Part shown: positions 958 to 64,000 of the stretch, piece after piece | How positions within the stretch are numbered: position 1 is the first letter of the stretch | How the letters are laid out: each line of letters begins with the position of its first letter | Source of the DNA: Perkinsela sp. CCAP 1560/9 | Taxonomy: Eukaryota > Protista > Euglenozoa: Kinetoplastea | Length of the DNA stretch: 64,000 bases | Assembly (NCBI GenBank): GCA_965644495.1 | Contig: CBFFSA010000001.1 | Coordinates: forward strand, 3,038,001 to 3,102,000 | Reading direction: 5' to 3' | The notes under the pieces: model-generated | Told to the model about the DNA's origin: nothing | Databases searched by the model: none | What the model saw: only the letters and a program-made list of their open reading frames with translations | Made by a program: the position numbers and the translations under genes

Positions 958-2571
958 CTACTGCCACCTGGACTTTCGAATCCATTCTTTAAATACCCCA
1001 TAGGATCTGAACTCTTTCACTGCGTCGGAATATTCGTTGGACTCATCTTTCATTTCTCCTCTTGTCGGACCCGTAACAGGGCACGTACGAAGGGTGCGGC
1101 TTATTGTCAGTGACTCACTCGACGCATACTTCCAGGCTCTGTCCTTCATTTTCTCGGAGCTCACTGTGCTATGTGAGCTAGGACAGTTTCTACGTTTTCT
1201 CGTCGCACCCATTAACATACCGTGTTTGGAGTCAATACGCTCATACAGGGGTGGCACATCTCGCGACCACAGCTCCGAATATGAACGCAAGGACAAGGGG
1301 ATCCCCTCGTGTATACAATCTACGCAATCCCGAAAGCAGGGTACCGAACCGACCACCGCTATACTTCGCAATGTCGAAGACGACGATGCATGGGTCCATA
1401 GCACATCGCTATCATTTTCTTCCCTTAACCTGCATTTACTGTTCCTCTCTCCTTTCCCTGCTCCAGAAAGTCTTCCCCAGAAAGCTCTCTCCAGTGCCGG
1501 TCGCTCCACAAGTTCGGAATGTGTCGTATGGACCACGAGGTACTCTAAATTGAGTTTTATGCCGCACAACGCTAGCAGAGCTCCCTGCAATCCCACAACT
1601 CCCCATTTGGCGATCTTATCCGAGCACGACATGCTGTGGCTGGGATGCCCACGACCGGGTTTCGTACGGACCAGTCCGGGGAGGAAATCGGAGGGATCGC
1701 CATGGGGAGCAATCATCTGGTTGTGGAGGGCATGGGCCCCCGTGGTGGGTCGTTTGCGGAGAGTACCGCCGGGTGGGCAAGTAGCTCCAGAACGCAGTTT
1801 CTCCGGATGAACGCTCTCTACAGGGATGTTATCCCATTCTTCACTCGTCTCTTTTTCCGCACTCTCACCTGAGACAATCTTTATTTTCCTTTTCTTGACG
1901 CTCCCTCCATCGATTTGGACATCATCCTCAAATTCCCTACCCGTCTCTTCTCGTATCTCCGGGACACACGCATCCCCACACGGGGGGTGGGATACGTACA
2001 ACACCCACCCGGTCGATGGAAGGCCATCCCTTTTTTCCTCTTTTCGTTTCAATGCGACATGCAGCAGTGCTCTCCGTGCTAACACCTCAGCATGACTATC
2101 CCGTAGAATATGAGAATACAAACCACCGGGGACGTTCCCCACACAACGAGATCCGGTACCCATACTGTGAACGATAGGAATTATTTTGGATGCTTCTGGA
2201 TCTGTTTGATTATTATTCGCATTCATTTTCTCTTTTCTGTGATACGTCTCTGGACTATTCAGATCCTCATGATGCTTTGTTTTCTCTTCTTGTTCATGAT
2301 TGGTTTCTGGACTGTTTGGGTTGTGATTCACTTTCTCTTTCTTATGATTGGTTTCTGGACTCTTCGTATTTTTATGATTATTGATGTTCTCTTCTTCTCT
2401 TTTATGATTGGTTTTACGTGAAACATGTACCAGCGCGGCTAGAATGGTACCCGAGGGGGTTGGGGTTCTGAACTCTGGGATTGTGTTATAATGATGTCGA
2501 ACACAGCGGACAATGGCACGGGTGTCCTCAAGAGTAAGGGAAAGGGGGAAGGTACTCGGGGTGGCTTTCAT
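958..2571 (-). CDS. ADAT1: tRNA-specific adenosine deaminase (ADAT1/Tad1-like)
   Basis: Motifs DSHAEVLARR, YVSHPPCGDA, RTKPGRG, SMSCSDKI.KW...GLQGALL; no dsRBD seen; low-complexity insert (NSPETNH repeats). Confidence 0.85.
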   Translation of the reverse strand: MKATPSTFPLSLTLEDTRAIVRCVRHHYNTIPEFRTPTPSGTILAALVHVSRKTNHKREEENINNHKNTKSPETNHKKEKVNHNPNSPETNHEQEEKTKHHEDLNSPETYHRKEKMNANNNQTDPEASKIIPIVHSMGTGSRCVGNVPGGLYSHILRDSHAEVLARRALLHVALKRKEEKRDGLPSTGWVLYVSHPPCGDACVPEIREETGREFEDDVQIDGGSVKKRKIKIVSGESAEKETSEEWDNIPVESVHPEKLRSGATCPPGGTLRKRPTTGAHALHNQMIAPHGDPSDFLPGLVRTKPGRGHPSHSMSCSDKIAKWGVVGLQGALLALCGIKLNLEYLVVHTTHSELVERPALERAFWGRLSGAGKGERNSKCRLREENDSDVLWTHASSSSTLRSIAVVGSVPCFRDCVDCIHEGIPLSLRSYSELWSRDVPPLYERIDSKHGMLMGATRKRRNCPSSHSTVSSEKMKDRAWKYASSESLTISRTLRTCPVTGPTRGEMKDESNEYSDAVKEFRSYGVFKEWIRKSRWQ

Positions 2572-6615: not shown

Positions 6616-8883
6616 TCAGAGTGGTTCAGGTGACGATTCGCGTTCCATGTCCTCGATTTCCGCAGTGCCGACATCGGATACTAAAAGCGGATGCGAAGTC
6701 TCTTCTTCTCCACCGTTGCCCGAAGGTGGGGTTCCATCCGATTCCGGTTTGTGCATAAACTCTACAAGATCATTCTTCGTAACTATACCGAGTAGAGCGC
6801 CGTTCTTGGTTATCAACACATGATGTACTCCAAGTGAGACAAAAAGTTGCAACAAACGCGAAACTGAATTCTGATAGTGCAACACAAGAGGGGAGTAGTC
6901 CATAAACTGTGCCAAATTCAACACCCCCGCCTCACTCGAATGCGTCAATCCCTCCTCACCTTCCTTAAAATTCACCACATGCGAAGAAACATCTCCCTCT
7001 GCACCCTTTCCAGCATTCTGCAATTCCCTCCACAAGTCTCTTCGCGTGATATACCCCAAAAGCTGCCCCGTTGCCAAAACCACCGGATACCCCCGATAGT
7101 CACACCTCTGCACCACCCCCCGCAGCTCCCCCACCGTCACCCCCCCCGCCCGCACCACACACATCTCCCGGCTCAACAACCCCATCTGCCCCACGGTGGT
7201 GGGGCCCTCCACACTCGCGCCGGGGGGGAGAAACGGGTACCGCATCGCCGCGAACTGCTCCTCGTAGATCGACCCCACCCCGAGCCAGGCCCCGAACGCC
7301 TTGGCGGCCATAATCGCCACCGCGCACGGCACCAGGTACTCAAGCCCCCCGGTCATCTCGAACGCCACCACCACCAGGCTCACTGTCATCCGGGACACCC
7401 CCGCGAGCACGGCCAGGGACCCCACGAGCGCGTAGATCCCGGGGTGCACACACGCGACGCCGTGCTGGCAGGCTGCCGGGAGCACGGACTGCGGGAGGAG
7501 CGCGACCTGGGCTTTTCGTAGCGCGATCCCCAGCGCTCTCCCCATCGCGCCCCCGATGAAGAGGGAGGGGACGAAGACCCCCGCGGGGAGGGGGGCGCCG
7601 TAGGTGAGGGCGGTGAGCAGGGTGGCGACGAGAGCGGTGAAGAGGAGTTGGAACAGCACGGCGCCCTCGTGGGGGTCGCAGAGGCCGTGGAGGTGGTGCC
7701 GGGAGCAGCCGTGGTAGGTCGCGGAGAGGAACTCGAGGGGGTTGCCCGTCATAAAGGGGTTGGAGAAGTTAAAGAGGGCGGTGAGGAGGGTGAGGAGGGC
7801 GACCTCGGTGGTGGGGTAGCGCCGGAGGGGGGTGGAGTGGCGGAAGGAGGTCCAGCGGAGGTTGAGGTAGGTGAGGGCGCTGCCGAGGGCACCCCCGAGG
7901 AGACCGAGGAGGAGGAAACCGGAGAGTTCGAACCAGTACCAGGCGTGGCGGTAGTCGACTTGGAACATGGTAAGCTTGCCGGTGTGGGTGGGGTCGATGC
8001 GTTGGAGGAGGATGGCGGCGGTGACACAGCAGATCAGGGCTTGGTGGAGAAGGCGGTGGGTGAAGAAATAGGAAATCTCCTCGATGCTGAAAATCACCCC
8101 ACCGATGGGAGCTCCGAAGGCTACACTGATGCCAGCACCCGCGGAGGCCGCAATGAGGTCACGGTATTTCGTCTCACTGTCGCGTACGGCGGGGAACAGT
8201 CGTGAGGTGACGTGACCCAAACAGCTGGCAATGTGAACAAAGGGACCTTCCTTGCCAATGCGCAGGCCGCTGCCTACGGAGAGGCAGAGCCCCAGAACCT
8301 TAACGATCAGTGTACGCAACGATAACAGGTGTTTAATGTTGGTCCCGGAGACGATCATTTTGAGTTCTAAAATACCCCCGCCTGCGGCAAAAGGGGCGTA
8401 CCATTGGACTAAAACAGAGCTCGACACGGCCATGACGACAGAGAGTAAGACGTAGATAAAACCTCGGAGTGCAAAATCTGAGGCGTGGTTGTGGTCCAAC
8501 AGCGAGCCTTTTCCCCATGTTGCCCATTCCGTACATTTCGCGACGTGCTGACCGACATATCCCATACAGCACTCATTTCTGGGGAGCCAAAAGAAATCTT
8601 GGCAAACACCGGTTTTCAGATCACCCAGCCAGCGACTCGTCACGTCCACGAAGGAAGCAACAACTCCGCACAAAACACCTGTTAGGATCAAGGTGAGCAA
8701 AAGTTGTGCGTGGTGTCCTGAAAGACCCCAAGGCAATCTTTTACTGGAACTACGGTCAGATGCAACGTGTCTTGTGCCCTCTAGTTCCCGGTGATGAACC
8801 CAATCCAAGTGGGTCCAGTTCTGCGGCATCCGTCCAGGGGTCCGCAGTATCCATGTTTTCAACGCATCGAGACTAAATACCAT
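6616..8883 (-). CDS. CLC family chloride channel/antiporter (CLC-3/4/5/Gef1-like) with CBS domains
   Basis: GGGILE, GKEGPFVH, FGAPIGGVIFSIEE, PAGVFVPSL, GIYALVG, C-terminal CBS pair. Confidence 0.93.
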   Translation of the reverse strand: MVFSLDALKTWILRTPGRMPQNWTHLDWVHHRELEGTRHVASDRSSSKRLPWGLSGHHAQLLLTLILTGVLCGVVASFVDVTSRWLGDLKTGVCQDFFWLPRNECCMGYVGQHVAKCTEWATWGKGSLLDHNHASDFALRGFIYVLLSVVMAVSSSVLVQWYAPFAAGGGILELKMIVSGTNIKHLLSLRTLIVKVLGLCLSVGSGLRIGKEGPFVHIASCLGHVTSRLFPAVRDSETKYRDLIAASAGAGISVAFGAPIGGVIFSIEEISYFFTHRLLHQALICCVTAAILLQRIDPTHTGKLTMFQVDYRHAWYWFELSGFLLLGLLGGALGSALTYLNLRWTSFRHSTPLRRYPTTEVALLTLLTALFNFSNPFMTGNPLEFLSATYHGCSRHHLHGLCDPHEGAVLFQLLFTALVATLLTALTYGAPLPAGVFVPSLFIGGAMGRALGIALRKAQVALLPQSVLPAACQHGVACVHPGIYALVGSLAVLAGVSRMTVSLVVVAFEMTGGLEYLVPCAVAIMAAKAFGAWLGVGSIYEEQFAAMRYPFLPPGASVEGPTTVGQMGLLSREMCVVRAGGVTVGELRGVVQRCDYRGYPVVLATGQLLGYITRRDLWRELQNAGKGAEGDVSSHVVNFKEGEEGLTHSSEAGVLNLAQFMDYSPLVLHYQNSVSRLLQLFVSLGVHHVLITKNGALLGIVTKNDLVEFMHKPESDGTPPSGNGGEEETSHPLLVSDVGTAEIEDMERESSPEPL

Positions 8884-36176: not shown

Positions 36177-37590
36177 CAGGGGTGTAAATTTGGATGTGGG
36201 GGGGTCTAAAATTCGTAAAACTTGGCCAATTGTGGAAAATAATAGCGCATTCGAGAACTCTCGAACAGGGCTCATGAACGCAACATGGCCGCGATAGGCA
36301 CAAGGGGGTATTGCCCCCTCGACAAAGGGCCCCCAAATGCGATTTGCAACTTTCTAAAGCACGGGAAAAAATAGAAAAAAAAATTAATAATTGCAGTTTC
36401 CGCCGTTCTTTTTAATCACAATACGGCATCGCTTACGAAAGCTCTTCATAGCGTTTTTAGAGGCTATAGAATGTGTCGTTTGAAGATCTTGAAACGCTGC
36501 TTCGATCGCAATGATCAAATCTGTACGATTTCTAGGGGCCAAACCATTTTTGAAATTGTCCATTATGGACCATAAATGTTCAACGGGCATGAGATCAGGT
36601 GATTTTGCTGGCCAAGGAAGAACAGTAATTCCTGTTTCTTGAAAACTTGTCCTGGCCAGATTGTGCACCGTACAGTTATCCATTGCAATAACGCTAGAAA
36701 GGTGCCGCTTAAGGTGAGAAATTAACCCTCCAAGCTTCTTCATGGCTTCATCAAATAGCCCCCGTCACTGTACCTCGGTTTCCTTGAGAACGAACAGAAG
36801 GAAAAACGTGAAGGTGAAACCCATGCTTAAGACTCGCTGCTATCCAAACCATAACACCATTCCCCCCATGCCATGCATCCAATTCACCTTGCTGCTCCTT
36901 GGGAGCGTCAGTTTTGCGGCAGAGGTACGTGATGTGCCCCCCACTCTTCCCACAGGTAATTTTTTTCATCCATCCAAATGATATTGGACAGTTCCGCGTC
37001 ACTCCACGTTAGCATTTCTTCACAGAAACGTACTCGCTTCTCTTTATGCACTGCGGTAAGTGCAGGGGATTTCCGGACTGTGCGCAAGACGATGCCATGT
37101 GATTTCATGTGGGTCGTCAAAGTTTGACGAGAGCAAGTGAACTCAAGATTTTTCATTAACCGGTGGAGCTCACTCCAGCTCCTGATGCCATAGGGTTGAT
37201 CTCGAACACCCTCGTCTATCGCTTTCAAAGCAGCCTCACGTAGTTCAGGTGTCACAGCGATGTTCGTTGGGGCGTGTTTCTGGTTCTTGGAGTCTACTTC
37301 TCCAGTATCACGATAGCGCTCCACCCAGCGCTTCACAGTAGCATCATGAACTTGGAAATTGCGCGCGGTTAGGGAAAAAGACTGCGTTGCTTCGTAATCG
37401 GCAACAAGAACCATGCGCCAGCTTGCTTTTATGTGCCCAGGCGAGGAATAAGCCCTTTCGGAGTGCTTATGTTCCGGAGGTCGTCCACAATCCCGTCGTT
37501 TTGGCATGAATAAGGGCAAAAAACAGAAAAATTGTGAAAATTGCAGGATTTCGTCTTCCAAAAAACTAAGTTTTTTTATGTGCATTCGAA
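36177..37590 (-). mobile_element. Tc1-like element with frameshifted DD32E transposase (36384-37507); one end missing
   Basis: TIR caggggtg..ggggtctaaaattcgt; WMDEK, MDNCTVH, WPAKSPDLMPVE. Confidence 0.85.
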
Positions 37591-37608
37591 AATCTAATTA
37601 ACACAAAG

Positions 37609-37833
37609 TCAGCCCCCCTCTTGGGAGCCGATATGGTGATTTGGTCATTTTTGGAAAAAAAAGTTGAAAAACCAATTATTTTTTTTGATTAATTTTTAAA
37701 ATTTTAAAATGAGCTAAAAACAGCGGGAACGTACAGATCTCAAAATTTTGAACGAAAATGTGGTATGATAACCCACCCACGCCCCCCTGTGCTAAAAATA
37801 AGGGGGGGTCACTTATTCGTGAGCGGGGGTTTA
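37609..37833 (-). mobile_element. Left-end fragment of the DD35E Tc1 family
   Basis: Inverted copy of 37836-38060. Confidence 0.75.
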
Positions 37834-37835
37834 TA

Positions 37836-39178
37836 TAAACCCCGCGTCACCAATAAGTGACCCCCCCTTATTTTTAGCACAGGAGGTCGTGGGGGGTTAT
37901 CATAGCACGTTGTCGTTCAAAATTTTGAGATCTGTACGTTCCCGCTGTTTTTAGCTCATTTTAAAACTTTAAAATTCAGTCAAAAAAATTTTTTTTTTTC
38001 AACTTTTTTTTCAAAAATGCCAAAATCACCATATCGACTCCCAAGAGGGGGGCTGACTTCTAGTGGAAAGGTTCTTTTAAAGATGAGGCACGGACAAGGA
38101 GTACCAATAAAAGAGCTAGCCCGTGATTTCAACGTTTCTAGAAGGATAGTTAAAAAATATTTGAACGAAAAAAAAATTACCCCAGTATACACTTTGAGTC
38201 CTGAGCGAAAAAAAATAATGAAAACTCGTAAAACGAAAATTGAGAAGATAATAACCCCTCTTGACCCCGCTGGAGTACCGAGACTCAATTCATCAAGGCG
38301 CATAGCAGCCCAATTGAAGAAAAAGAATATATAAGTTTCAAAAAGAACTGTACAGAGAGACTTATCATCCCTGGATTGCAGTTATGCCGCTCGACCGCTA
38401 TGCCAAGGACTTACCAAACGACAAAAACTAAAAAGAGTTCAATTTGCGTTGAATTACAATATGGATACTTCCCGTGTCATCTTTACAGACGAAAAAATAT
38501 TTGATACGAATGATGGCAGAAGAAAAATGTGGGTAAGGCGCGGTCAAAAAGCAGCCCCGCGTCAAAAAGTACGTTGGGCACCAAGATGCCAAGTTTGGGG
38601 TGCTGTAGGAGTGGGGTGAAGGTACTTGGTAATTCTACAAAATGACACATCTATTACAAGTGAGACGTACATAGAAACATTAAAAGAGGTAGATTTCCCC
38701 CCTAATCGTATTTTTCAGCAAGATGGGGCAACGGCACACACTGCTCGTGCCTCAAAGGAGTACATTGAAAGCGCAATGAGTGAACTTCTGAAAAATTGGC
38801 CCCCCAACTCACCAGATCTTTCCCCAATAGAAAACGTCTGGTCTATGGTCCAAGGGGCGGTGGACGAACAGACCCCATCGGATAAGCCTTCACTCATCCG
38901 ATGTGTACGCAAAGCGTGGTCTCGCTTGTCTCAAAATGTGATCGACAAAACGGTCTTAAGCTTTGACTCACGCCTTAAGGAGTGTATAAGATTGAAAGTC
39001 GAAAAAGTGAAAAAATGGTAATTCCTCAATAAAATATACGTATTCGCTTCTTTTTGTTTCATTTCTTCACGCGCAAAGTCCTTGTGTTGAGATCTGCAAA
39101 ATGCAACAAAAATAAGCTCAAACGGACACTTACGGACGAAAAAAAAGTGGGGGGTCACTTTTCATGACGCGAGGTTTA
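37836..39178 (+). mobile_element. Tc1-like DD35E element, transposase 38017-39021 with in-frame stops
   Basis: TIRs taaaccccgcgtca / tgacgcgaggttta; FTDEK, FQQDGATAH, WPPNSPDLSPIE. Confidence 0.88.
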
Positions 39179-39182
39179 TATA

Positions 39183-40740
39183 CAGGGGTGAAAATCCCAT
39201 GGTGGGGGGGTCTAAAATTCGTAAAATTTGTCCAATTTTGGAAAATAATAGCGCGTTCGAGAGCTCTCGCAGAGTTGTATGTTTTAAGATAGGCAGTTTG
39301 CGGGGGTTAGGGGGGTACCCCCCTTTGATGGAAGGGTCAAAAACACGATTTGCAAATTTGAAAAACTGTAAAAAATGGTCAAAAATTACCCTTAATACCC
39401 ACAGGAAGACCCGTTTCGCTCAATAACGATGCGACAACGCTTGCGGAAACTGCTCATCGTGTTAATACATTCTTGCTTGCGTTCTGATTGTAATCTTTCG
39501 AACGCTGTCTCAATGGCCGATACTAATTCAGCCCGATTCTTGGGTCGAAGATCATTTTTGATGCTGTCCATGGTCCCCCAAAGGTTTTCAATGGTGTTTA
39601 AATCGGGGGATTTTGCAGGCCAAGAGAGTACATTAATACCTTCGTTACGAAAGGTTGTTCGCGCAGAATTATGAACAGGACAATTATCCATTGCAACGAC
39701 TCCAGATGGGTGGCGCCTCAAATAATTTAAAAGTCCTTTGCGCTTCTTCATGGCGTCATTGAAAGCATCCCCTGTTACAGTTACTTTTCGGCCGGAAGGG
39801 TCGTGGGAGGGAAAAATGTGTAGACGAAATCCATGATTTAAACTGACCCCCATCCACACCATGACGCCGTTCCCTCCATACCAAGGTTCTAGCTCTCCCT
39901 GCTGTTCCTTGGCGGGGTCAGTCTTCCGGCAAAGGTAAGTAATTTTGTTTCGTCCCCTACCGCAAGTGAACTTCTTCTCATCGCAGAAAACAATTTGTCT
40001 CAGTTGGGTATCTGACCAAGTGAGCATCTCAGAACAAAAATGCACTCGTTTCCTCTTGTGTTCATCGGTCAGTGCGGGCTTTCTTTTTAAAGTTCGCATG
40101 ATCATACCATGGCTCTTCATGGCGTTAACCAAAGTTGGTCTTGAACACTGAAATCCAAGAAAAAGCACAACTCTATGGAGTGCACACCAGTTCTCAATCC
40201 CGTACGGGAGGTCACGGTATCCCTCATCAATGAGGCGGATAGCTGCTTCGTGCAGCGCAGGGGTACTGACAGGAGATGGGCGTGAAATAGGAGAGCTTTC
40301 CACGTCTCCAGTGTTCTCATAGCGTATCACAAGACGTTTTACTGTATTTTCGTGGACGCCGAAGTTTTGGGCTGTCCGAGAATAGGACCCTGTCTCAAGA
40401 TAATCTGAGACAAGAAGCATACGGTGACTTGGTATCACCCGTGCGGGGGAGGAATAGGACCTGTCGCTGAGTACACCACGTGAGGTTCGGGAACGAATCC
40501 GTTTCTGGGGCATATAGTGCTAATATTGACTGAAAAACAGCTAAAAACTGAAAAAACGTAAATTTGGGCAAGAAAAAAAATCACGATTTTTTTGGTCTCA
40601 TCGTTTCATGTTGAGTCACAGGCCGCAAATAGTGCTAAAATATACAACTCTGCGAGAGCTCTCGAATGCGCTATTACTTTCCAAAATTGGATAATTTTTA
40701 CGAATTTTAGCCCCCCCCCACCACGAGGTTTTCACCCCTG
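39183..40740 (-). mobile_element. Full-length Tc1-like element, ~100-bp TIRs, TA flanks
   Basis: caggggtgaaaa...ttttcacccctg. Confidence 0.92.
39392..40513 (-). CDS. Intact Tc1/mariner transposase, DD32E spacing
   Basis: HTH N-terminus; FCDEK, MDNCPVH, WPAKSPDLNTIE. Confidence 0.92.
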   Translation of the reverse strand: MPQKRIRSRTSRGVLSDRSYSSPARVIPSHRMLLVSDYLETGSYSRTAQNFGVHENTVKRLVIRYENTGDVESSPISRPSPVSTPALHEAAIRLIDEGYRDLPYGIENWCALHRVVLFLGFQCSRPTLVNAMKSHGMIMRTLKRKPALTDEHKRKRVHFCSEMLTWSDTQLRQIVFCDEKKFTCGRGRNKITYLCRKTDPAKEQQGELEPWYGGNGVMVWMGVSLNHGFRLHIFPSHDPSGRKVTVTGDAFNDAMKKRKGLLNYLRRHPSGVVAMDNCPVHNSARTTFRNEGINVLSWPAKSPDLNTIENLWGTMDSIKNDLRPKNRAELVSAIETAFERLQSERKQECINTMSSFRKRCRIVIERNGSSCGY

Positions 40741-41822
40741 TATATATATATATATGTGTGTGTGTGTGTGAGGGGGGAATATTAATAGGAAGTAAAGCAT
40801 ATTCTCAACACGATTGGGGTCACCCGCATTGGGAAGTGCTCCGCCCATGGGAAAAATCAGAAGACGTATAATAAATTAACAAGGAGTGAACTGAAGTCTA
40901 AGGCGGCATAAATAAGTGCAGCATAAATATTTTGCTTTTTGAACACGAAAAAGAAGCATCGGAAATATTTATAAACTACTTTTCCAGATGCACTTGATAA
41001 CATTGAAGAATTGGGAGCACAACGATTATCAATTTAATATACCGTCAAAGTATTTACCAGCAAAATAAAATCATTGGAATAAACTTTTTGTTGTAAAAAT
41101 TGGCTGAATGATAATTTACAAAATTTACTTTTCAGCGAATCGCATCGTGTTATTGATATTGATTAGGGATTTGGTTTTTATTATTTTCAATTAGCGGACA
41201 CCCGCCTTCCTCCACTCTTTTACCGCGGAGGATAGTATCGCGGCGTTGCCTTTTTGAACAGCCACATTAATGGCTTGTAGTGCATGACGCAGGAAACCTT
41301 TCCTGTCATACGTATACCTTGCGATCTCCTTTAGGAGGAGTACGGTGCGCTTCCCTGCCACACCAAAAACGGTAAATGCAAGGGGGTAGAAATGCATACC
41401 CCTTTTCGTGGCCATGTCACTGTGCGCTTTTACTTTCAAGCTTTCCACCCTTTCTAGAGTGTTGCCAGGCGCTACCCATTCGGCCTTAACATAAGAAGGG
41501 ACGAGGGGGTTAACGACGGTCACGTCCACCAGACATACAGTCAGCAAAAAAACCGTTCGAATGTTTCGGTTTTTTTTTCTTTTGTATAGAGCTATTGATT
41601 AAATATCACCGTTGCGCTGGTAATGTGTGCTAGTAGTGTAGGCATGAGTGTCACCTAATAGTACCCGTAGATAGTTCACCTCAGTTCGTTCTACCAAAGA
41701 AATAAGAATGAATATAAAAAAGTTTAGCATTCGAAAGGTTTTTTTGCTACCTATTATAGAGAAAATCTTGTCCCAAAAAATAGATGAAACGTAATCGCCC
41801 AAGAGAGATTATGCCCCTAAAA

Positions 41823-42833
41823 TTAGTATTTAGTATTCCCCCCACGAGCCTTCAGCACTGCCTTCATACGGGCAGGCATACTGTCCACCTGGGCACGACA
41901 TACTGAGGGTGGTATGTTCGCCCATTCCATTTTTACCCTCTCCCACAACTCTCGGACCCCGCTTGGTGGATCATCGTGCGCTGCAAGGCGCCGCTTGAGT
42001 TCCCCCCAAACGTTTTCGATTGGATTTAAGTCAGGGGACTGCGTGGGCCACCGCATGACTTCAAACCCGGTACCCCGGAGGTGCCGTTGCGCACAATGGC
42101 TTGTGTGCTTGGGGTCATTATCTTGTTGGAAGATGACCATTGGGGGGTCTAGACCCATAGTTTCGATGGAGGGGGCAAGATTCTCTTCAAGAATCTCGAC
42201 GTACTGTGTGGCGTTCAGGTTCCCTTGAACTAGACGCACATGCCCCACACCGCTTCGGGACATGCACGCCCAAATCATGATGTGCCCCCCTCCGTACTTT
42301 ACCGTGGGAATTACCCCTTTTTCACCCAGTTCCTCCCCCGGGGTCCCCCATGTCCAAAGACTTCCCCCCGTTTCAAAGCGCGAGATCTTCGTCTCGTCCG
42401 ACCATACAACTGGAGCCCAGTCGTGCACTGTCCAGTGCTCATGGGCCGTGGCAAAGTCCATCCGAAGCTTGCGATGGCGCTTGGACAGGTAGGGCTTGCG
42501 GACACGCTTTCTACCTTTGTGTCCGAAGCGGTGCATCGAAACTCGGATAGACTGAGGAACAACATCAGCAACGCCCTCGCGGCGCAGCTGAGATGATACC
42601 TCTCGCGCAGAATTTCCGGAGAACACAAGTCGTCGCACACGGCGTGTGCACGGCTCGGAAAGCTTTCGAGGGCGTCCACCCTGCATCCTGAGAGTATCAG
42701 GCCTTTCCTTTTTTAAGATCATAGAAATTGTTGAGATACTTAAATTTACAGTATCAGAGATGGACCTCATAGACACACCGCTGTCGTAGAGCTCTGCAAT
42801 TTGTTTCTTTACGTAACGTGGTGTGGGCCTCAT
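41823..42833 (-). CDS. Tc1 transposase DD34E, left arm
   Basis: GRPRKL, WSDETK, FQQDNDPKH, WPTQSPDLNPIE. Confidence 0.93.
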   Translation of the reverse strand: MRPTPRYVKKQIAELYDSGVSMRSISDTVNLSISTISMILKKERPDTLRMQGGRPRKLSEPCTRRVRRLVFSGNSAREVSSQLRREGVADVVPQSIRVSMHRFGHKGRKRVRKPYLSKRHRKLRMDFATAHEHWTVHDWAPVVWSDETKISRFETGGSLWTWGTPGEELGEKGVIPTVKYGGGHIMIWACMSRSGVGHVRLVQGNLNATQYVEILEENLAPSIETMGLDPPMVIFQQDNDPKHTSHCAQRHLRGTGFEVMRWPTQSPDLNPIENVWGELKRRLAAHDDPPSGVRELWERVKMEWANIPPSVCRAQVDSMPARMKAVLKARGGNTKY

Positions 42834-42930
42834 ATAGAGTGCAAAATGTAACAGTGTAAGATAAACAATGTAATAGTATAAGATAAACTCTATAACCGAA
42901 AATTCTTCTTACCTAAAATTCTTATTTTCT

Positions 42931-43941
42931 ATGACGCCCACACCACGTTACGTAAAGAAACAAATTGCAGAGCTCTACGACAGCGGTGTGTCTATGAGGT
43001 CCATCTCTGATACTGTAAATTTAAGTATCTCAACAATTTCTATGATCTTAAAAAAGGAAAGGCCTGATACTCTCAGGATGCAGGGTGGACGCCCTCGAAA
43101 GCTTTCCGAGCCGTGCACACGCCGTGTGCGACGACTTGTGTTCTCCGGAAATTCTGCGCGAGAGGTATCATCTCAGCTGCGCCGCGAGGGCGTTGCTGAT
43201 GTTGTTCCTCAGTCTATCCGAGTTTCGATGCACCGCTTCGGACACAAAGGTAGAAAGCGTGTCCGCAAGCCCTACCTGTCCAAGCGCCATCGCAAGCTTC
43301 GGATGGACTTTGCCACGGCCCATGAGCACTGGACAGTGCACGACTGGGCTCCAGTTGTATGGTCGGACGAGACGAAGATCTCGCGCTTTGAAACGGGGGG
43401 AAGTCCTTGGACATGGGGGACCCCGGGGGAGGAACTGGGTGAAAAAGGGGTAATTCCCACGGTAAAGTACGGAGGGGGGCACATCATGATTTGGGCGTGC
43501 ATGTCCCGAAGCGGTGTGGGGCATGTGCGTCTAGTTCAAGGGAACCTGAACGCCACACAGTACGTCGAGATTCTTGAAGAGAATCTTGCCCCCTCCATCG
43601 AAACTATGGGTCTAGACCCCCCAATGGTCATCTTCCAACAAGATAATGACCCCAAGCACACAAGCCATTGTGCGCAACGGCACCTCCGGGGTACCGGGTT
43701 TGAAGTCATGCGGTGGCCCCCGCAGTCCCCTGACTTAAATCCAATCGAAAACGTTTGGGGGGAACTCAAGCGGCGCCTTGCAGCGCACGATGATCCACCA
43801 AGCGGGGTCCGAGAGTTGTGGGAGAGGGTAAAAATGGAATGGGCGAACATACCACCCTCAGTATGTCGTGCCCAGGTGGACAGTATGCCTGCCCGTATGA
43901 AGGCAGTGCTGAAGGCTCGTGGGGGGAATACTAAATACTAA
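42931..43941 (+). CDS. Tc1 transposase DD34E, right arm
   Basis: Same protein with 3 aa differences; WPPQSPDLNPIE. Confidence 0.93.
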   Translation: MTPTPRYVKKQIAELYDSGVSMRSISDTVNLSISTISMILKKERPDTLRMQGGRPRKLSEPCTRRVRRLVFSGNSAREVSSQLRREGVADVVPQSIRVSMHRFGHKGRKRVRKPYLSKRHRKLRMDFATAHEHWTVHDWAPVVWSDETKISRFETGGSPWTWGTPGEELGEKGVIPTVKYGGGHIMIWACMSRSGVGHVRLVQGNLNATQYVEILEENLAPSIETMGLDPPMVIFQQDNDPKHTSHCAQRHLRGTGFEVMRWPPQSPDLNPIENVWGELKRRLAAHDDPPSGVRELWERVKMEWANIPPSVCRAQVDSMPARMKAVLKARGGNTKY

Positions 43942-53888: not shown

Positions 53889-54377
53889 ACAATAGGGTGT
53901 AAATCAGGTTCACGGAAACTTCAATAAAGTAAAATAAAGTTTTTTTTCTGAATAAAGTTACTACCATCAAACCATTAATTAAGAGACACATTAAACAAGG
54001 GAACGCCAACTAAGGGAACACTGATTAAGGTACTATACCCCCCCCTGCTTATGAGTTCCCCGGTTTTGAGAAAAAGGAACTCATAAGCGTACCAGATCAG
54101 AATTCGAGCCATAAAAACGCGAAAATTCGGGCCCGCAGCGCGAAGCGCCGCGGGTTTTCCTTTACAATAAGAGGGCGGAAACTAGAGATTTACGATCCCG
54201 GACGATCCCACCGGTCCTGGTTGAATTTACGTAGAGAAAATACTTGGTGAAAACGCGAGTTCTAAAAATTCGGCGAAAGAAATAGCGACCATTTTTTTAG
54301 AGAAACTCATTCAATTGTTAAAAATCAAAAACGATCTTCATATGAAGGTAAGAGAAACTAAACAAACATTATCACTC

Positions 54378-54446
54378 CTTCGTAAACACGCTTGTTACCG
54401 GTCCCAAGCCCGGCACCGCCATATTTGGCGGAGTGTGAGGGTGAAG
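54378..54446 (+). ncRNA. Twister self-cleaving ribozyme (type P1, with P5)
   Basis: P1 CUUCG/UGAAG; L1 UAA; P2 ACAC/GUGU; GC pseudoknot partner; P4 CCGG/CCGG with loop UCCCAAGC; P5 CCGCCA/UGGCGG; GAGGG; predicted cut U54383/A54384. Confidence 0.9.
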
Positions 54447-54603
54447 ATTTCAATCCATCTATGGCATGGTTATAAACTTAAGAATATAATTAAACTCCTC
54501 GTTTCTCGTATCCAGTAGAACTACTACATTTAGCTCCATTTAACTAAACAATTTTACACGCCTGCAAATGCTACGCATCGATTCGCTTGGTCCCGGCCTG
54601 ACA

Positions 54604-54845
54604 ATATTCATCCTCTGTAACGAGGCCCATGGGCTCCGTACCCTTCGGGGTACCACCGCCCCAGCATTCGTGCTGGGAGGCCCATGGGCTCCGTGTCCTT
54701 CGGGGCACACCTGCCGTTGCATTTATATTCATCCTCTGTAACGAGGCCCATGGGCTCCGTACCCTTCGGGGTACCACCGCCCCAGCATTCGTGCTGGGAG
54801 GCCCATGGGCTCCGTGTCCTTCGGGACACACTTGCCGTTGCATTT
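54604..54845 (+). repeat. 2 x 121-bp tandem repeat of UUCG-capped hairpins
   Basis: Units 54604-54724 and 54725-54845 differ at 2 nt. Confidence 0.92.
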
Positions 54846-55524
54846 GCGTTATACACCCTCCTCTCCGGCATGATTTTTTACAATAAAGTGAAAACAGAAT
54901 AGAAACAGAAGGGAGAGGGTGGGAAATTGTGACGTGCTATGGCATGCCTGGCACCCAGGGCTTGGTCCCGGTAACATGGTGCTTACGAAGGAGTGATAAT
55001 GAGGGAGTTGCTATGCTCTGTCCATGGTATCATGTTCAGGGGAACAGCAACTCCCCATTATCTCGGCGTAGTAAACACGCCTTGGCTTGCCTGGCACTAC
55101 GATTGCCGAAAAAAAAAAAATTATTCCATTAGTCCTCACTTGAGGCCTGTTAGCGGGAGTCCTCCCCCCTAAGAAGATTTGAAGTTGAAAAAAAAAAAGT
55201 GGAGTGTTCGGGAAAGGGGGGGTATTGTTGGTACGTTATAGATCCTCCCATACGGAAGTATCAAGGCAACACCCCGGACGTCCCGGGTTGACGCTGGGAA
55301 TACGGCTTTTCAGGATATCTCGCCTAGTAGGAATATTGATTCAGAAATTCAGACCGACGATAGTGAACGCGTTGCTTTGCTTGATGCGTTTATCCCCGAA
55401 TTCTTTATTAGCAAAGATTCATCATAAATACTGAAGGAACAACTTGGTCTCTTTACATCAACACACCTTAGTTCGCAGTAAACGTTTTCCTTATATTTCC
55501 TAACTCTTAATTCGTGATCTATAA

Positions 55525-56529
55525 ATGCCCGCAACGCGACGAGGATCCGGTTTGTGCGACTCTCCAGCGACGCAATCGACACGCAACACAGGGGATGAAA
55601 ATGTACGAATTCCTTCAGAGTTGCCATCTGCTGAACGGTGTTCAACGAGAACAGATCTCAAAATACACCTACGCTTTGATCGAGCTGTAGGGTGTTCTCA
55701 AATCGCGAAATATATGGGCGAGATTTCTGAAGACGACTGCGCAGCAGCTGTCCTCGAGTACGTAGACAGTGCATTAAAGGCCGCGACGGATACTGAGCGA
55801 GTATCTGCCACCAGCCAAATACTAAGTGTGCGTCGATCTCAAGATGTTTCACTCCTGGAATCTTTGGTTTCGGAAGAAGGGAACCGTTCTGCTCTGGCTA
55901 CGTTGCTAATTGATCCGCCTAAAGAGGCGAAAAAATTAAAGGTGCGCGATGGGGAAAAAGAGGGGGGGCAACTTACATCATGGACTGGAACAGAACGACG
56001 TCCTAGCCTTGGGGGTCATTTAAGGGTAGCCCTTCTAGATGGCAACTTTCGGTTTTTTTCTTCCGGGCTGCTACAAACACGGTTCGGGCGTTTTTTCGAA
56101 TCAGTTTTTCAGGAGGCTGGAAAAGGGATATCACCATCCATATGTCAGGAGTCAGAAGCCATCTCCGTATCCGCCAATCACTTTTTGCTTGAACTCGCGG
56201 CCCTTTTCCTTGCCTTTAATGCAAACTCTGATCAAGCCAATACTGGCAAGTGTGTGCAGGCGTGCCGCGAAAACGTGGGTCTTCTTCCGAAAGCGGATCG
56301 AATAATACTGCCCCCGTCTGTTCTGAGCGTGAACGGCAAACAAAAGCACCACAATTTTTACAAAAGCCAAAATGGACTCCTTGAAGAATCTAGTCGATTA
56401 AAGAGGTTCACATTCAGAGGCGACCGCAATGCCAAATTTAGTCGCGGTCATGCAAGCGGGCAAGGAAATGTGCGACGATCCGATCACGCAGCCTCAGAAA
56501 ATACAGCGAAAGCTCAAAAGGAGAACTAA
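55525..56529 (+). CDS. Hypothetical protein, possible gag-like ORF of a YR element
   Basis: 334-aa ORF between the twister and the tyrosine recombinase, same strand, basic C-terminus; no motif recognised. Confidence 0.45.
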   Translation: MPATRRGSGLCDSPATQSTRNTGDENVRIPSELPSAERCSTRTDLKIHLRFDRAVGCSQIAKYMGEISEDDCAAAVLEYVDSALKAATDTERVSATSQILSVRRSQDVSLLESLVSEEGNRSALATLLIDPPKEAKKLKVRDGEKEGGQLTSWTGTERRPSLGGHLRVALLDGNFRFFSSGLLQTRFGRFFESVFQEAGKGISPSICQESEAISVSANHFLLELAALFLAFNANSDQANTGKCVQACRENVGLLPKADRIILPPSVLSVNGKQKHHNFYKSQNGLLEESSRLKRFTFRGDRNAKFSRGHASGQGNVRRSDHAASENTAKAQKEN

Positions 56530-57087
56530 GGAAAACGAAAATTCGGCGTTTCTACGATACCATGTTTATTATGATAAGTTAGGGAAAGATGGTTATCGTT
56601 TCGAGGTTTTAAAAAGTACAATTGTGGCAAAGGGAAAGATTCTTGGGGAGAAAAACCAAATGCCACAGGTAATTATTACAAAATATCACCTGAAGAGGGA
56701 TCTGCACTAAAGGGTCCGCTAGTCTGTTTTATACGGAACAGAAAATAATTGCTAATCTGGTTACAAATCATTAATAATATATGCGTGGCATTGCTGGTGC
56801 TTCATCAATATTTTATGTTATTTTTACGTATAATTTTTAGGGGTTTTTTCCATGTTTAATATGATGTGTGTCACATCCATCAGACCTACACTTTTTCCCC
56901 ACCAATTTTCTATTATCAATGCAACGCGAGGAAAGCTCTTTTACCATATTATTACTCTAGGATCATTATTACTCTAGAATCATTCAGAGCAAGCGCCCGT
57001 CTTATCTTTATTCAATTGTTTTACTCAACTGAATATTTCACAGAAAAAAAAAACTACACTTTTCAAAGACAAAAGATAAAGTTTTGT

Positions 57088-58918
57088 ATGACTGGTCTCA
57101 AGGACACTGATGACCACCGAGGTGGTGAAAGAAGCTACATCGAAAAACTGGCGCTGCAGTCTATTGCACCGGGAACTCAAAAATTGTATCAGAACCGCAT
57201 TGACACTCTCAAACAGTTTTGTACAATGCATGGGTATGAACGCATTACAAAACAAGCTTTGGACATTTTCTCCACTGTCAAGCGTCATGTGGAACTGCGA
57301 AATCAACATTACAAGGATACCGCAGCGCTCTACTTTTCTATCAAGAAATTACTAATTTCGATCTAGATGAGAGTGAATCCCCTTGGGCGGCAGATCGCGT
57401 TATATTGCGGGCGGTGGAGGGAGCAGCGGTTGAAGGTAAGATGCACCGCCAGGAAAAGCGTCCTAGAGGTTATAAACCCCCGCTCACAAAAAGTGACCCC
57501 CCTCTTTTTTTTTCGTACAAATGTCCGTTTGAGCTGATTTTTGTTGAATTTTGCAGATCTCAACACAAGGACTTTGCGCGTGAAGAAATGAGACAAAAAG
57601 AAACGAATACGCACAATTTAGAGAAGAATTAACATTTTTTCACTTTTTCGCCCTTCAATCTTGTACACTCTTTAAGTCGAGAATCAAAACTTAATACTGT
57701 TTTGTCGATCACTTTTTGAGTTAAAGAAGACCATGCTTTACGTACACATCGGATAAGTGAAGGCTTGTCCGATGGCGTTTGTTCGTCTACCGCCTCTTGG
57801 ACCATAGACCAGACGTTTTCTATAGGGGAAAGGTCGGGCGAGTTGGGGGGCCAGTTTCTTAGAACATCACTCATTCGATTCTCAATATACTCTTTGGAGG
57901 CACGGGCAGTATGTGCCGTTGCCCCATCCTGTTGAAATACACTATTAGGGGGGAAATCTACCTGTTTTGATGTTTCTATGTACGTCTTACTTGTAATAGA
58001 TGTGTCACTTGGTAGAATAACCAAATACCTCCACCCACAGGACTCAAAGTGTATTCCCCGCTAGATTTTTTTTCGTTCAGATATTTTTTGATTATCCTTC
58101 TAGAGACGTTAAAATCACGGGATAATTGTTTAATCGGAACACCTTCTCCATGTCTCATCTTCAAAAGAACCTTACCACAATCCGTAAGCGCCCCTTTTGG
58201 AAGTCGATATGGTGATTTGGTCATTTTTGGAAAAAAAAGTTGAAAAGTCAATTATTTTTTTTGACTAAATTTTAAAATTTTAAAATGAGCTAAAAACAGC
58301 GGGATCGTGCAGATCTCGAAATTTTGAACGAAACAGTGGTATGATAACCCACCCACGCCCCCATGTGCTAAAAATAAGGGGGGGTCACTTATTCGTGAGC
58401 GGGGGTTTATATCAGAAAGCATGTTGAACGAATTGTTATCCTGGGTCCTCCCTCTGAAAAATGGTCCTGAACTTGCGCGTGCACTCAAGGTCCAATATTA
58501 CGCGGCCTTGCGCTCTTGTGAAGTCGAAGGACTCCGTGGAGGCGACTTACAAGGGGAAGGTGCGTGGGCCTTCCTACATATACGTAGCGACAAGGTTCAA
58601 AGGCAATCTTCCGATAGACAACGATGTAAACCACTATCTCCTATGGGAGCACAAGTAGTTCGAAGCGCCCTTTTAAATGTGGAACATGGTAAAATTGCGT
58701 TTCCTGCCTACAAAAAACGTTGCGCTGCTAGGCTTGTAAAACAAGCATCCCAAGAGCTAGGGTGGCCCTCCAATGTATGTTTCGACGGCACTCATACTCT
58801 CAGACACGGTGGCACAGGTGTGGTCATTGAAAGCGCCGTGAATATTATATCAAATGCTCTTACAGGTATGTCAAAACAGGTTCGCCAAAGCCACTACTTG
58901 GCTCCCAGATCACAATAA
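57088..58918 (+). pseudogene. Tyrosine recombinase (DIRS/VIPER/TATE/Crypton-like), frameshifted and split by Tc1
   Basis: SIAPGTQKLYQ N-terminal motif; YYAALRSCE (R), RSDK (K), HTLRHGG (HxxR), QSHY (Y). Confidence 0.8.
57473..58409 (-). mobile_element. Internally deleted DD35E Tc1 copy
   Basis: TIRs taaacccccgctcac; homologous to 37836-39178 with a central deletion. Confidence 0.88.
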
Positions 58919-60648: not shown

Positions 60649-60686
60649 AACTTTAACGATAAAGATACAGTTTCTGTACCTTGTTG
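60649..60686 (+). other. Full-length spliced-leader exon, retroposed
   Basis: AACTTTAACGATAAAGATACAGTTTCTGTACCTTGTTG, 38-39 nt, ends TTG, not followed by GT. Confidence 0.85.
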
Positions 60687-60729
60687 CTTGTTGATTTTAC
60701 GTAGTATTCTCTCGGGGCCCAGCTCTTTT

Positions 60730-61382: not shown

Positions 61383-64000
61383 TTAATAGGCACTTGCGTA
61401 CATCCCAGTCTTGCCTTGCGAACTTCCCAGAAACTGGCGTAACTGGGCGTAGACTTCGTTTCCATTTAAGTCTTGGAGTAATAACTTGAAGTCCATCTCC
61501 ACTGTCTTCCTATCCAACATGGCTGCATCCGCAAGTGCATGTATCAGAAATCTTGTGTTCTGGTGGAGAGAACCGCAAGAAAAGATCGGAAGGCATTGAA
61601 ACGCGAACTCTGGAATCATACCGGTTGTAACGTAGGTATCTTTCTTCCGTTTAATTACGTCTTGCATTAGTTTCACGCAAGTTTTAGATTGGTTCGATGG
61701 CGCAAGCTCGTGTATTATAGACACGTCGTAGAAGATTTCTCCGGTGCTCCAGAAAATGGCCAGATCCGGCCCCGATCGGTATAGCTGTCGACCGGTGCAA
61801 CATTTTTCATGAGTCATTTTATTCTCGGGTTCGACCTTTCGGCTACACACACCACACCGCCACGCACTGAAGGCTCGCGGCTCTTTTTCACACGGTATCC
61901 CCGCCTTATTGGCTAAGTCGAACAGGTATTTCACCAAACTATTATGTTTTGTTGTGGCATTAAAACCGTAGCACTGCACGCATCCAGGTATGTGGTGTAG
62001 AGCAGATTGACTGTTCAGTATTGTTTTGCACCCGGGGCATAACAGCTTCTCAGGTAGACGAGGATGGGCTATTCCTAATCGCGTCATAATGGCCATCTCG
62101 AAGTGTCGCGATGGGACGAATCTAGCGGCAGACGTTAACCAGTCGTAACTTCCCTTGCGAGTAGTGGCGCTCAGTATTTTGGAAATATTTGGATTCTGTC
62201 TCAGTCTCTCCAGTACTTCCTCATGCTCTAAGGCTGCGATCGTTTTGTCATCTGTCGGGGGCTTTCGGTTTTGACCTTCGTTGGCAAGCGCTATATGATT
62301 TTCCACTGATCCACTCTGAGCAGAAAAGGATTTTTGTCGCTCATATGAGGAATACAATGAAGCTTCATACGCTGCTGCGCGAATTTTACTGCAGGACGTC
62401 AAACCTAAACCTCCCTTTTTCGCCGGTAACCGAGCCATCTTGATCTGATTCGCCGTTAGGGATCCAAGCCATGTGCTCAAAACGTCTTCAACTTTCTCAT
62501 CAAAACAGTCAGCGATCTGCTCAGTGATGTCAGGCGGATGTACACGCACTGCGTACTGCATCTTCACGTTTATGCTGTGGGATAATAAACTGAGCGACAC
62601 ATTGTTAAGCCCCATGATCTTCAGCCGACTGAAAGCTAAGTTATGTTGTTCAAGTTGGCCCGTCAGCCTCTCCGCCACCGTTGTATTCTTGCTAATGAAT
62701 GCTCCCAACACCTTTGTGGCTTCATTTTCGTTGATGACTCCCGCATTCTCGAGACATGGCGGAATCGCAATTTGGTTCCTCCCGCCGAACCATACACATT
62801 TCTTGGCAGCAAGCTCTATAGATTGTTCCTTGACGATTTCTTGGAGTCTGCCGAATGCTTTTTCGATGTCGGAGGCATTCATAGATGATATTGTGACGTC
62901 ATCGATGTATGCGTGTAATTCCACGTTCGGAAATTCCTTGGCCAGCGTCTCTCAAATGGGTTGCATATAGATACAAAAATAAAGAGAAGCTAACGGCGAT
63001 CCCTGCCTGAGTCCCGACGAACTTGGCACGACTCCAAACAATTTGTTTTCCGATCCGTAGAATAGAAGTTCAGAGGTGCCAGCGTATTCGACCTGGAAGA
63101 ATCTTTGAAATGGTCGCAACGCGCTAAAGGCGAAAACGTGCTTTGCTATTTCTTTCCTGCATGGAGAATTAAACGCATTTTTAAAATCAATTGCGAGCAT
63201 CGAATGACCTTTATTGTAACGCTCACGAAGTTTGTGGACTATTCGTTCGCATCCAGCCCGAGCAAATACTCCCTGTTGCATTGGAGCGAAGAGTGGTGCC
63301 AGAGTGTGTTCATACCGTTGCATGAGTACTATTCCAGCCAGTTTGTTGAGAACCTCGCCCATTGCTACGGGACGCACTCCTCCGCCCCCCTTCGGTATGG
63401 CGACCAGCCGAGCCCGGTTTAGACGCTGAGTTACATCCTTCGAGAGAAAGCCGTTTAGAAGATCGCGTATCATGTGACACAAGCTTCCGCAGGACACCTC
63501 GTCATCGGTCATGAGGCGCACAATACCGTCGGTCATTCCCGTAGGCCCGGGGCTAACTCCTTTCGCCAGCCTTTTGGCAGCGCTACGTAGCTCTTCAGGT
63601 GTGACCCCAGCCAAGGTGGGCGCGTCTTCGGGTGCCTCAAAGTCACATGGTTTTTGAGGATGCAACTCTGTTAACTTGTCCAAAACCTCCTCGTCGGACA
63701 AATTGATTGATTTAAACTTTTGACTCAATGTTTTTGCCGCTTTACACGCGCACCCTTCCAAGACTAGTCTCTTTGCTTTGTTAATGGCACGTAAATCCTG
63801 GGCAGCATCGCTGTCAACCGTCGCCTTCGGAGTGAAAGGTTTACGTCTTGTGCTGCGTTTATCCACATCTCGTATTGTCACCAATGATAGTTTCATCGCT
63901 GACAATAGCCGATGCCAAATCTGGTTTCGTTGCGCAAAATCGACATTTGCGTAGTTCCGTATAATATCGCGCAGTGTGGCGACGACGCACGGAATAAATT
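61383..64000 (-). mobile_element. CRE-like RLE retrotransposon, one frameshift, runs off the window
   Basis: SPGPTG, RPVAMGE, DFKNAFNS, GLRQGSPL, YIDD, GGLGL, CPGC..H...C, GPD...YDVS. Confidence 0.9.

Follow-up and report, generated by a model that had tools for sequence, protein, structure and literature searches.

Within the analyzed window (64,000 nucleotides of contig CBFFSA010000001.1 of Perkinsela sp. CCAP 1560/9), we observe a type-P1 twister ribozyme fold on the forward strand at 54378-54446, followed on the same strand by tandem hairpin repeats, an internal complementary region (ICR), an open reading frame of 334 amino acids, and a tyrosine recombinase (YR). In the twister fold, P1 (54378-82/54442-46), P2, P4, an extra P5 hairpin, and the pseudoknots T1 (GC/GC) and T2 (CCC/GGG) all pair, the conserved L1/L4 residues of twister-P1 are present, and the predicted cut lies between U54383 and A54384. 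The element begins at 54367 with the CAT crossover triplet, and this left boundary is sharp in at least 15 copies with unrelated flanks. The 17 nt from 54367 to 54383 lie upstream of the predicted cut and would be lost from the RNA. Two 121-nt tandem repeats of UUCG-capped hairpins follow at 54604-54845 (+), with a folding z of -4.8, forming a spacer between ribozyme and ICR whose unit and copy number vary between subfamilies.

The ICR (54958-55118, +) is the antisense of the junction that a circular form of the element would have. Its left half (54958-55001) is antisense to 54367-54411, being 17/17 identical upstream of the predicted cut and mismatched downstream, and its right half (54999-55118) is antisense to the 3' terminus of the element, with 95.8% identity over 119 nt to the 3' end of the sister copy at locus L035 (loci and contigs compared here are numbered with the prefix L) and 95 to 100% within intact copies. 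The two halves overlap by the 3-nt junction ATG (54999-55001). ORF1 (55525-56529, +) has 17 matches in the genome and can be called gag-like only by its position and by homology to a Bodo saltans ORF1 that ends in a CCHC knuckle (hhalign, 78%, E 1.7e-5). Its structural model is all helical without a confident fold match, the best being filovirus VP30 CTD at a Z of 7.8, which is within background, and an atlas search returned no hit. The N-terminal part of the recombinase (57088-57472, +) is frameshifted near 57250-57270, as seen by tblastn with intact copies, and is separated from the catalytic part (58410-58918, +; 64% identical to intact copies and carrying R, K, HxxR, and Y, these residues within 58421-58918) by a Tc1/mariner-type insertion on the reverse strand at 57473-58409. 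This insertion has inverted ends of ~40 nt, is flanked by TA, contains a DDE_3 fragment at 57629-58024, and is not part of the element. Homology to intact copies ends at 58918, with RT/RNase H and the right terminus missing.

The observation made in the earlier note, which had described the complete twister fold, the 334-amino-acid ORF, and the recombinase residues from sequence alone, is confirmed, and its statement that no RT is adjacent is true for this copy. However, the recombinase is broken, the "dense hairpins" of that note are the two tandem repeats plus the ICR, which it missed, and the left boundary, which it held to be undefinable, can be defined. Rfam gives nothing at the gathering score and recovers only the core of this copy (17.9 bits), while sister copies match twister-P1 (RF03160) over the full model with E values of 1.4e-4 to 0.04. 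All copies nevertheless score below the Rfam gathering threshold of 67.2 bits (best copy, 37.4 bits), the P5 hairpin being an insertion relative to the model. Across 12 copies, 85.8% of cells pair and 14 of 24 pairs change on both sides, including T2 (CCC/GGG to CCA/UGG). Slid controls are lower, and 0 of 500 shuffles reach the covariation score, although the copies are related and this is support rather than a probability. P1 is weak in the copies L018/L031, and some copies carry core mutations.

The genome holds 85 matches to a twister model built from these copies, and the co-occurrence of twister and recombinase in other copies, which had been proposed beforehand as a check, was examined across the genome. 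Of the 16 YR loci, 12 have a same-strand twister within 12 kb upstream, as do 11 of 16 ORF1 loci and 22 of 38 RT loci, against a chance expectation of ~0.024 and an opposite-strand control of 0/16. Several near-full RT copies have no model match upstream, and about 50 of the 85 twisters could not be tied to a YR element with the sequence at hand, 20 regions having been retrieved. Intact copies (L017 and L019) read ORF1-YR-RT/RNase H, with Pfam hits for Phage_integrase, RT, and RNase H. A second family, whose RT is about 20% identical and which carries a CCHC gag, has the same twister and layout, and the ICR is present in seven full copies of the two RT families. At least five copies of 2.4 to 2.9 kb share one internal deletion yet keep both ends, the twister, and the ICR, and were therefore probably mobilized in trans. 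A search of sequencing runs found the element in three DNA runs and in no RNA run, the one RNA run examined, chosen by guess, giving 0 contigs.

In intact copies, the 5' UTR contains, after the tandem hairpins, the reverse complement of the first ~45 nt followed by that of the last 115 to 157 nt of the element, overlapping by three bases. Insertions carry CA(T/G/A/C) in family 1 or CTT in family 2 at both borders, without a longer target duplication. The right end holds a short inverted copy of the left end (6 to 27 nt, degenerate) and a hairpin of ~50 nt, so that the junction folds into a long stem. No ribozyme was found at the 3' end by Rfam or by descriptors. Over 15 copies, the ICR matches 205 of 210 positions in the 14 nt before the predicted cut and 162 of 210 after it, with the first fixed mismatch at +3 in family 1 and at +8 to +11 in family 2. 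This is expected if the upstream part is copied from the ICR in each cycle while the downstream part comes from the RNA and need only anneal, and is indirect evidence that the RNA begins at the cut.

Nine left borders of subfamilies 1b and 1c sit behind the 5' half of the spliced leader (SL), and 11 right-end-like sites precede CAGTTT. In L017 the SL is split, with its 5' half on the left and its 3' half on the right, which shows insertion into an SL copy and rules out an SL-headed (trans-spliced) origin of the subfamily 1b flanks for this locus. The subfamily of the window copy has varied flanks. An SL core is dispersed in the genome, occurring 533 times against 5 for the control, as described for Perkinsela (PMC5601477), and the best named hits of a host gene are PhM-4 (54%) and Perkinsela (48%), followed by trypanosomatids. 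These data support the kinetoplastid host proposed in the earlier note, most likely an early-branching kinetoplastid (prokinetoplastid).

Only two contigs from outside this genome show the full layout. L053, a JGI lake metagenome contig, encodes gag(CCHC)-YR-RT and has a twister at 145-226 (E 0.006 among 278 kb) with a weak P1 and compensatory changes in both pseudoknots (T1 AC/GU and T2 GCC/GGC), and its ICR is perfect for 28 nt and mismatched from +1. L041, an ENA metagenome contig in the order YR-gag-RT, has at the same place an HDV-like fold starting at 160, in which all stems pair but which Rfam scores weakly at 26.9 bits (E 0.62; gathering score, 44), and its ICR is perfect over the ~80 nt upstream and mismatched from +2. 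L044 and the B. saltans contig L039, the latter not among the published copies, show 5'-UTR matches inverted to the 3' end, with left ends that are not resolved. Other relatives have direct repeats (L040, L042, L045, L050, L068, L071, L076, and L084) and show no ribozyme match, though most of these contigs are too short to decide. Viral contigs contained no relatives. In a midpoint-rooted RT tree of relatives without reference VIPER/TATE sequences or outgroups, the inverted type falls in two groups, from which we draw no conclusion on the order of events.

Taken together, we are fairly confident that the locus is a dead, 3'-truncated copy of a YR (DIRS-order) retrotransposon of 6.9 kb when intact, reading twister, tandem hairpins, ICR, gag, YR, RT/RNase H, and terminal hairpin. 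The sequences themselves establish the layout, both termini, the ICR as antisense of the 3'-end/5'-end junction with a 3-nt overlap, the related triplets at both insertion borders, and ICR mismatches that begin 1 to 3 nt after the predicted cut (8 to 11 nt in family 2). What follows, including cleavage and priming themselves, is inferred. It is very likely that host read-through transcription enters the element and that the twister cuts 17 nt inside the left end, which would give every genomic RNA the same 5' end without a promoter, the hairpin spacer letting it fold before the antisense ICR is made. It is equally likely that reverse transcription stops at that end and that the cDNA 3' end anneals to its own ICR copy, is extended over the missing 17 nt, and meets the copy of the right end, closing a circle, as in the DIRS-1 model, in which the ICR was shown to be essential (PMC7192593). 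The YR would then recombine the junction triplet with a genomic CA(T/G) site. For priming, no route is more likely than not: the RNA 3' end may anneal to the ICR next to the 17-nt gap and prime there, which would give a unit-length cDNA after one fold-back and is slightly preferred, self-priming by the 3' hairpin is a close second, and another route is less likely. Proteins probably come from separately trans-spliced ORFs, as inferred from spacers of ~0.5 kb.

The interpretation in the earlier note, a YR element, RT-less or mobilized in trans, whose RNA end is set by twister cleavage, is partly supported. The twister is part of a YR element, and its inferred role in setting the RNA end is supported; the linkage, which that note rested on adjacency only, is now seen across copies, across RT families only about 20% identical, and in another organism. 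An RT-less or Crypton-like element is rejected, since intact copies encode RT/RNase H after the YR and this copy is simply truncated. The ICR explains how a cut inside the element would be tolerated. The CRE-type RT at 61383-63905 was rejected as a partner because it is on the opposite strand and belongs to another class.

Among alternative readings, the antisense segment could be a regulatory anti-ribozyme switch that turns cleavage off rather than a replication template, since in a fold of the cut 5' UTR the ICR pairs with and opens the 5' half of the twister. We consider this unlikely, as the segment continues without a break into a 120- to 157-nt complement of the 3' end, overlaps by exactly the insertion triplet, is perfect where the RNA would be lost and imperfect over the catalytic core, and is made 0.05 to 1.4 kb after the ribozyme, although the two roles are not exclusive. 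Slightly less likely still, the ribozyme could mainly serve translation or stability of an uncapped RNA, as proposed for R2 and Perere-3, or RNA circularization, with the end set otherwise. Twister cleavage sufficed for reporter translation in Perere-3 (PMC8501958); however, ORF1 starts over 1.1 kb downstream behind very stable hairpins, there is one ribozyme per element and no terminal direct repeats, unlike in retrozymes, and ICR mismatches begin at the predicted cut. That twister and recombinase are chance neighbors, or that the fold is inactive and kept for DNA-level reasons, is very improbable despite the degenerate window copy and the many twisters not tied to an element, given the colinearity in 12 of 16 loci, the pseudoknot covariation in three lineages, and the HDV-like fold at the same position in L041.

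Self-cleaving ribozymes are known in non-LTR elements, Penelope-like elements, SINEs, and retrozymes (PMC6765202), whereas our searches of the open literature, which did not extend to subscription journals or Repbase, found none in YR retrotransposons and no twister in kinetoplastids. How DIRS-type reverse transcription is primed is still unknown (PMC7192593), and here one RNA end would be chemically fixed with the ICR beside it, making priming and end repair accessible with purified RNA and RT. The proposed function would also give twister ribozymes a second defined biological role, and the element adds a third terminal layout to the YR retroelements. More tentatively, and less likely than not, these elements could represent a previously undescribed, promoterless subgroup of YR retrotransposons in protists, in which an exchangeable self-cleaving ribozyme (twister or HDV-like) fixes the RNA 5' end and a 5'-located ICR both primes reverse transcription from the RNA's own 3' end and rebuilds the circle junction, a primer-free replication cycle with one lineage targeted to SL sequence.

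We place the element as a variant within the DIRS order, with YR, RT/RNase H, and a gag-like ORF in one element. On the inferred mechanism it works like DIRS1-like retrotransposons (PMC3266345, PMC7192593), with which it shares two ICR halves overlapping on a 3-nt circular junction, a triplet at both ends without target duplication, and a short, partly inverted end plus a right extension with a hairpin. It differs from them in that the ICR lies in the 5' UTR and not at the 3' end, long conserved ITRs and a methyltransferase are lacking (ORF3 ends after RNase H), the YR is the second ORF and precedes RT, the ORFs do not overlap, and the RNA 5' end appears to be set by a ribozyme instead of an ITR promoter. 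With VIPER and TATE (PMC6681497) it shares a kinetoplastid host and the gag-YR-RT/RNase H order, and its closest named RT relative is a B. saltans protein, CUF79501.1. VIPER and TATE, however, have split direct repeats where self-comparison shows an inverted ICR here, the RT ORF is ~570 amino acids versus ~850 to 950, no trypanosomatid VIPER/TATE protein is among the profile hits, and that paper mentions no ribozyme. The ribozyme-headed non-LTR elements L1Tc and R2 (HDV-like; PMC6765202) and Perere-3 (twister; PMC8501958) likewise carry a 5' self-cleaving ribozyme that frees element RNA from a cotranscript, but they integrate by target-primed reverse transcription and cut at or near the element border, whereas here the predicted cut is inside the element and the lost part would be templated by the ICR. 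Finally, one subfamily inserts into SL sequence as do the CRE/SLACS/CZAR elements, though insertion would be by a recombinase at a triplet and not by endonuclease and target-primed reverse transcription, and the subfamily of the window copy has varied targets.

Just upstream of the 3' terminus, we observe a conserved structured motif in loci L016 (positions 1790-1905, minus strand), L018, L019, L031, and L035. It consists of a hairpin followed by GGGGAGATCAC and GCCCCTTAAGTGGGA blocks, possibly forming a pseudoknot. No match to this motif was found in Rfam, and it may represent a packaging or 3'-end signal. At the opposite end of the element, a second short copy of the ICR core, antisense to the twister L4/P4 region, was identified at window positions 54587-54598, just before the tandem repeats. 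The four best structural matches of the helical N-domain of ORF1 (window 55561-55929, residues 37-135) are all filovirus VP30 C-terminal domains (Z 7.1-7.8, rmsd over 3 A), yet these scores lie within the background for helical domains.

Elsewhere in the genome (G000), groups of twister matches with identical scores, some spaced 6.5 kb apart, were observed on contig C9 (211793-296672), at C2:40911, C2:949547, C4:1119136, and C8:161850, and on contigs C18 and C51. These are not tied to a YR element and may belong to another element family. In addition, left-end and right-end patterns were found only 70 bp apart inside an SL copy on contig C2 (770821-770905), which is a possible minimal remnant. 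A spliced-leader-like 35-mer is present in the window at 60653-60690, 26947, and 31692, in some copies followed by a GT donor. Genome-wide, we counted 364 exact 22-mer copies, several of them heading CRE-like or other non-LTR RT elements.

Among the relatives outside this genome, L045, L047 to L049, and L050 carry direct repeats, and their right ends finish in AATCC, with L045 also displaying a 97-nt direct repeat upstream of tandem hairpins in the 5' UTR. In contrast, the Bodo saltans contig CYKH01000408.1 (L039) harbors a gag-YR-RT element with a 5'-UTR segment inverted to its 3' end (960-1387 and 7731-7861). Its RT is annotated as "transmembrane protein," and the element is not among the published VIPER/TATE copies. 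Finally, Tc1/mariner-type transposases, several with open frames, were identified at window positions 36908-43941 and 57473-58409. These may be unreported in kinetoplastids, since Merlin was reported in 2021 as the first DNA transposon of this group (PMC8101967).
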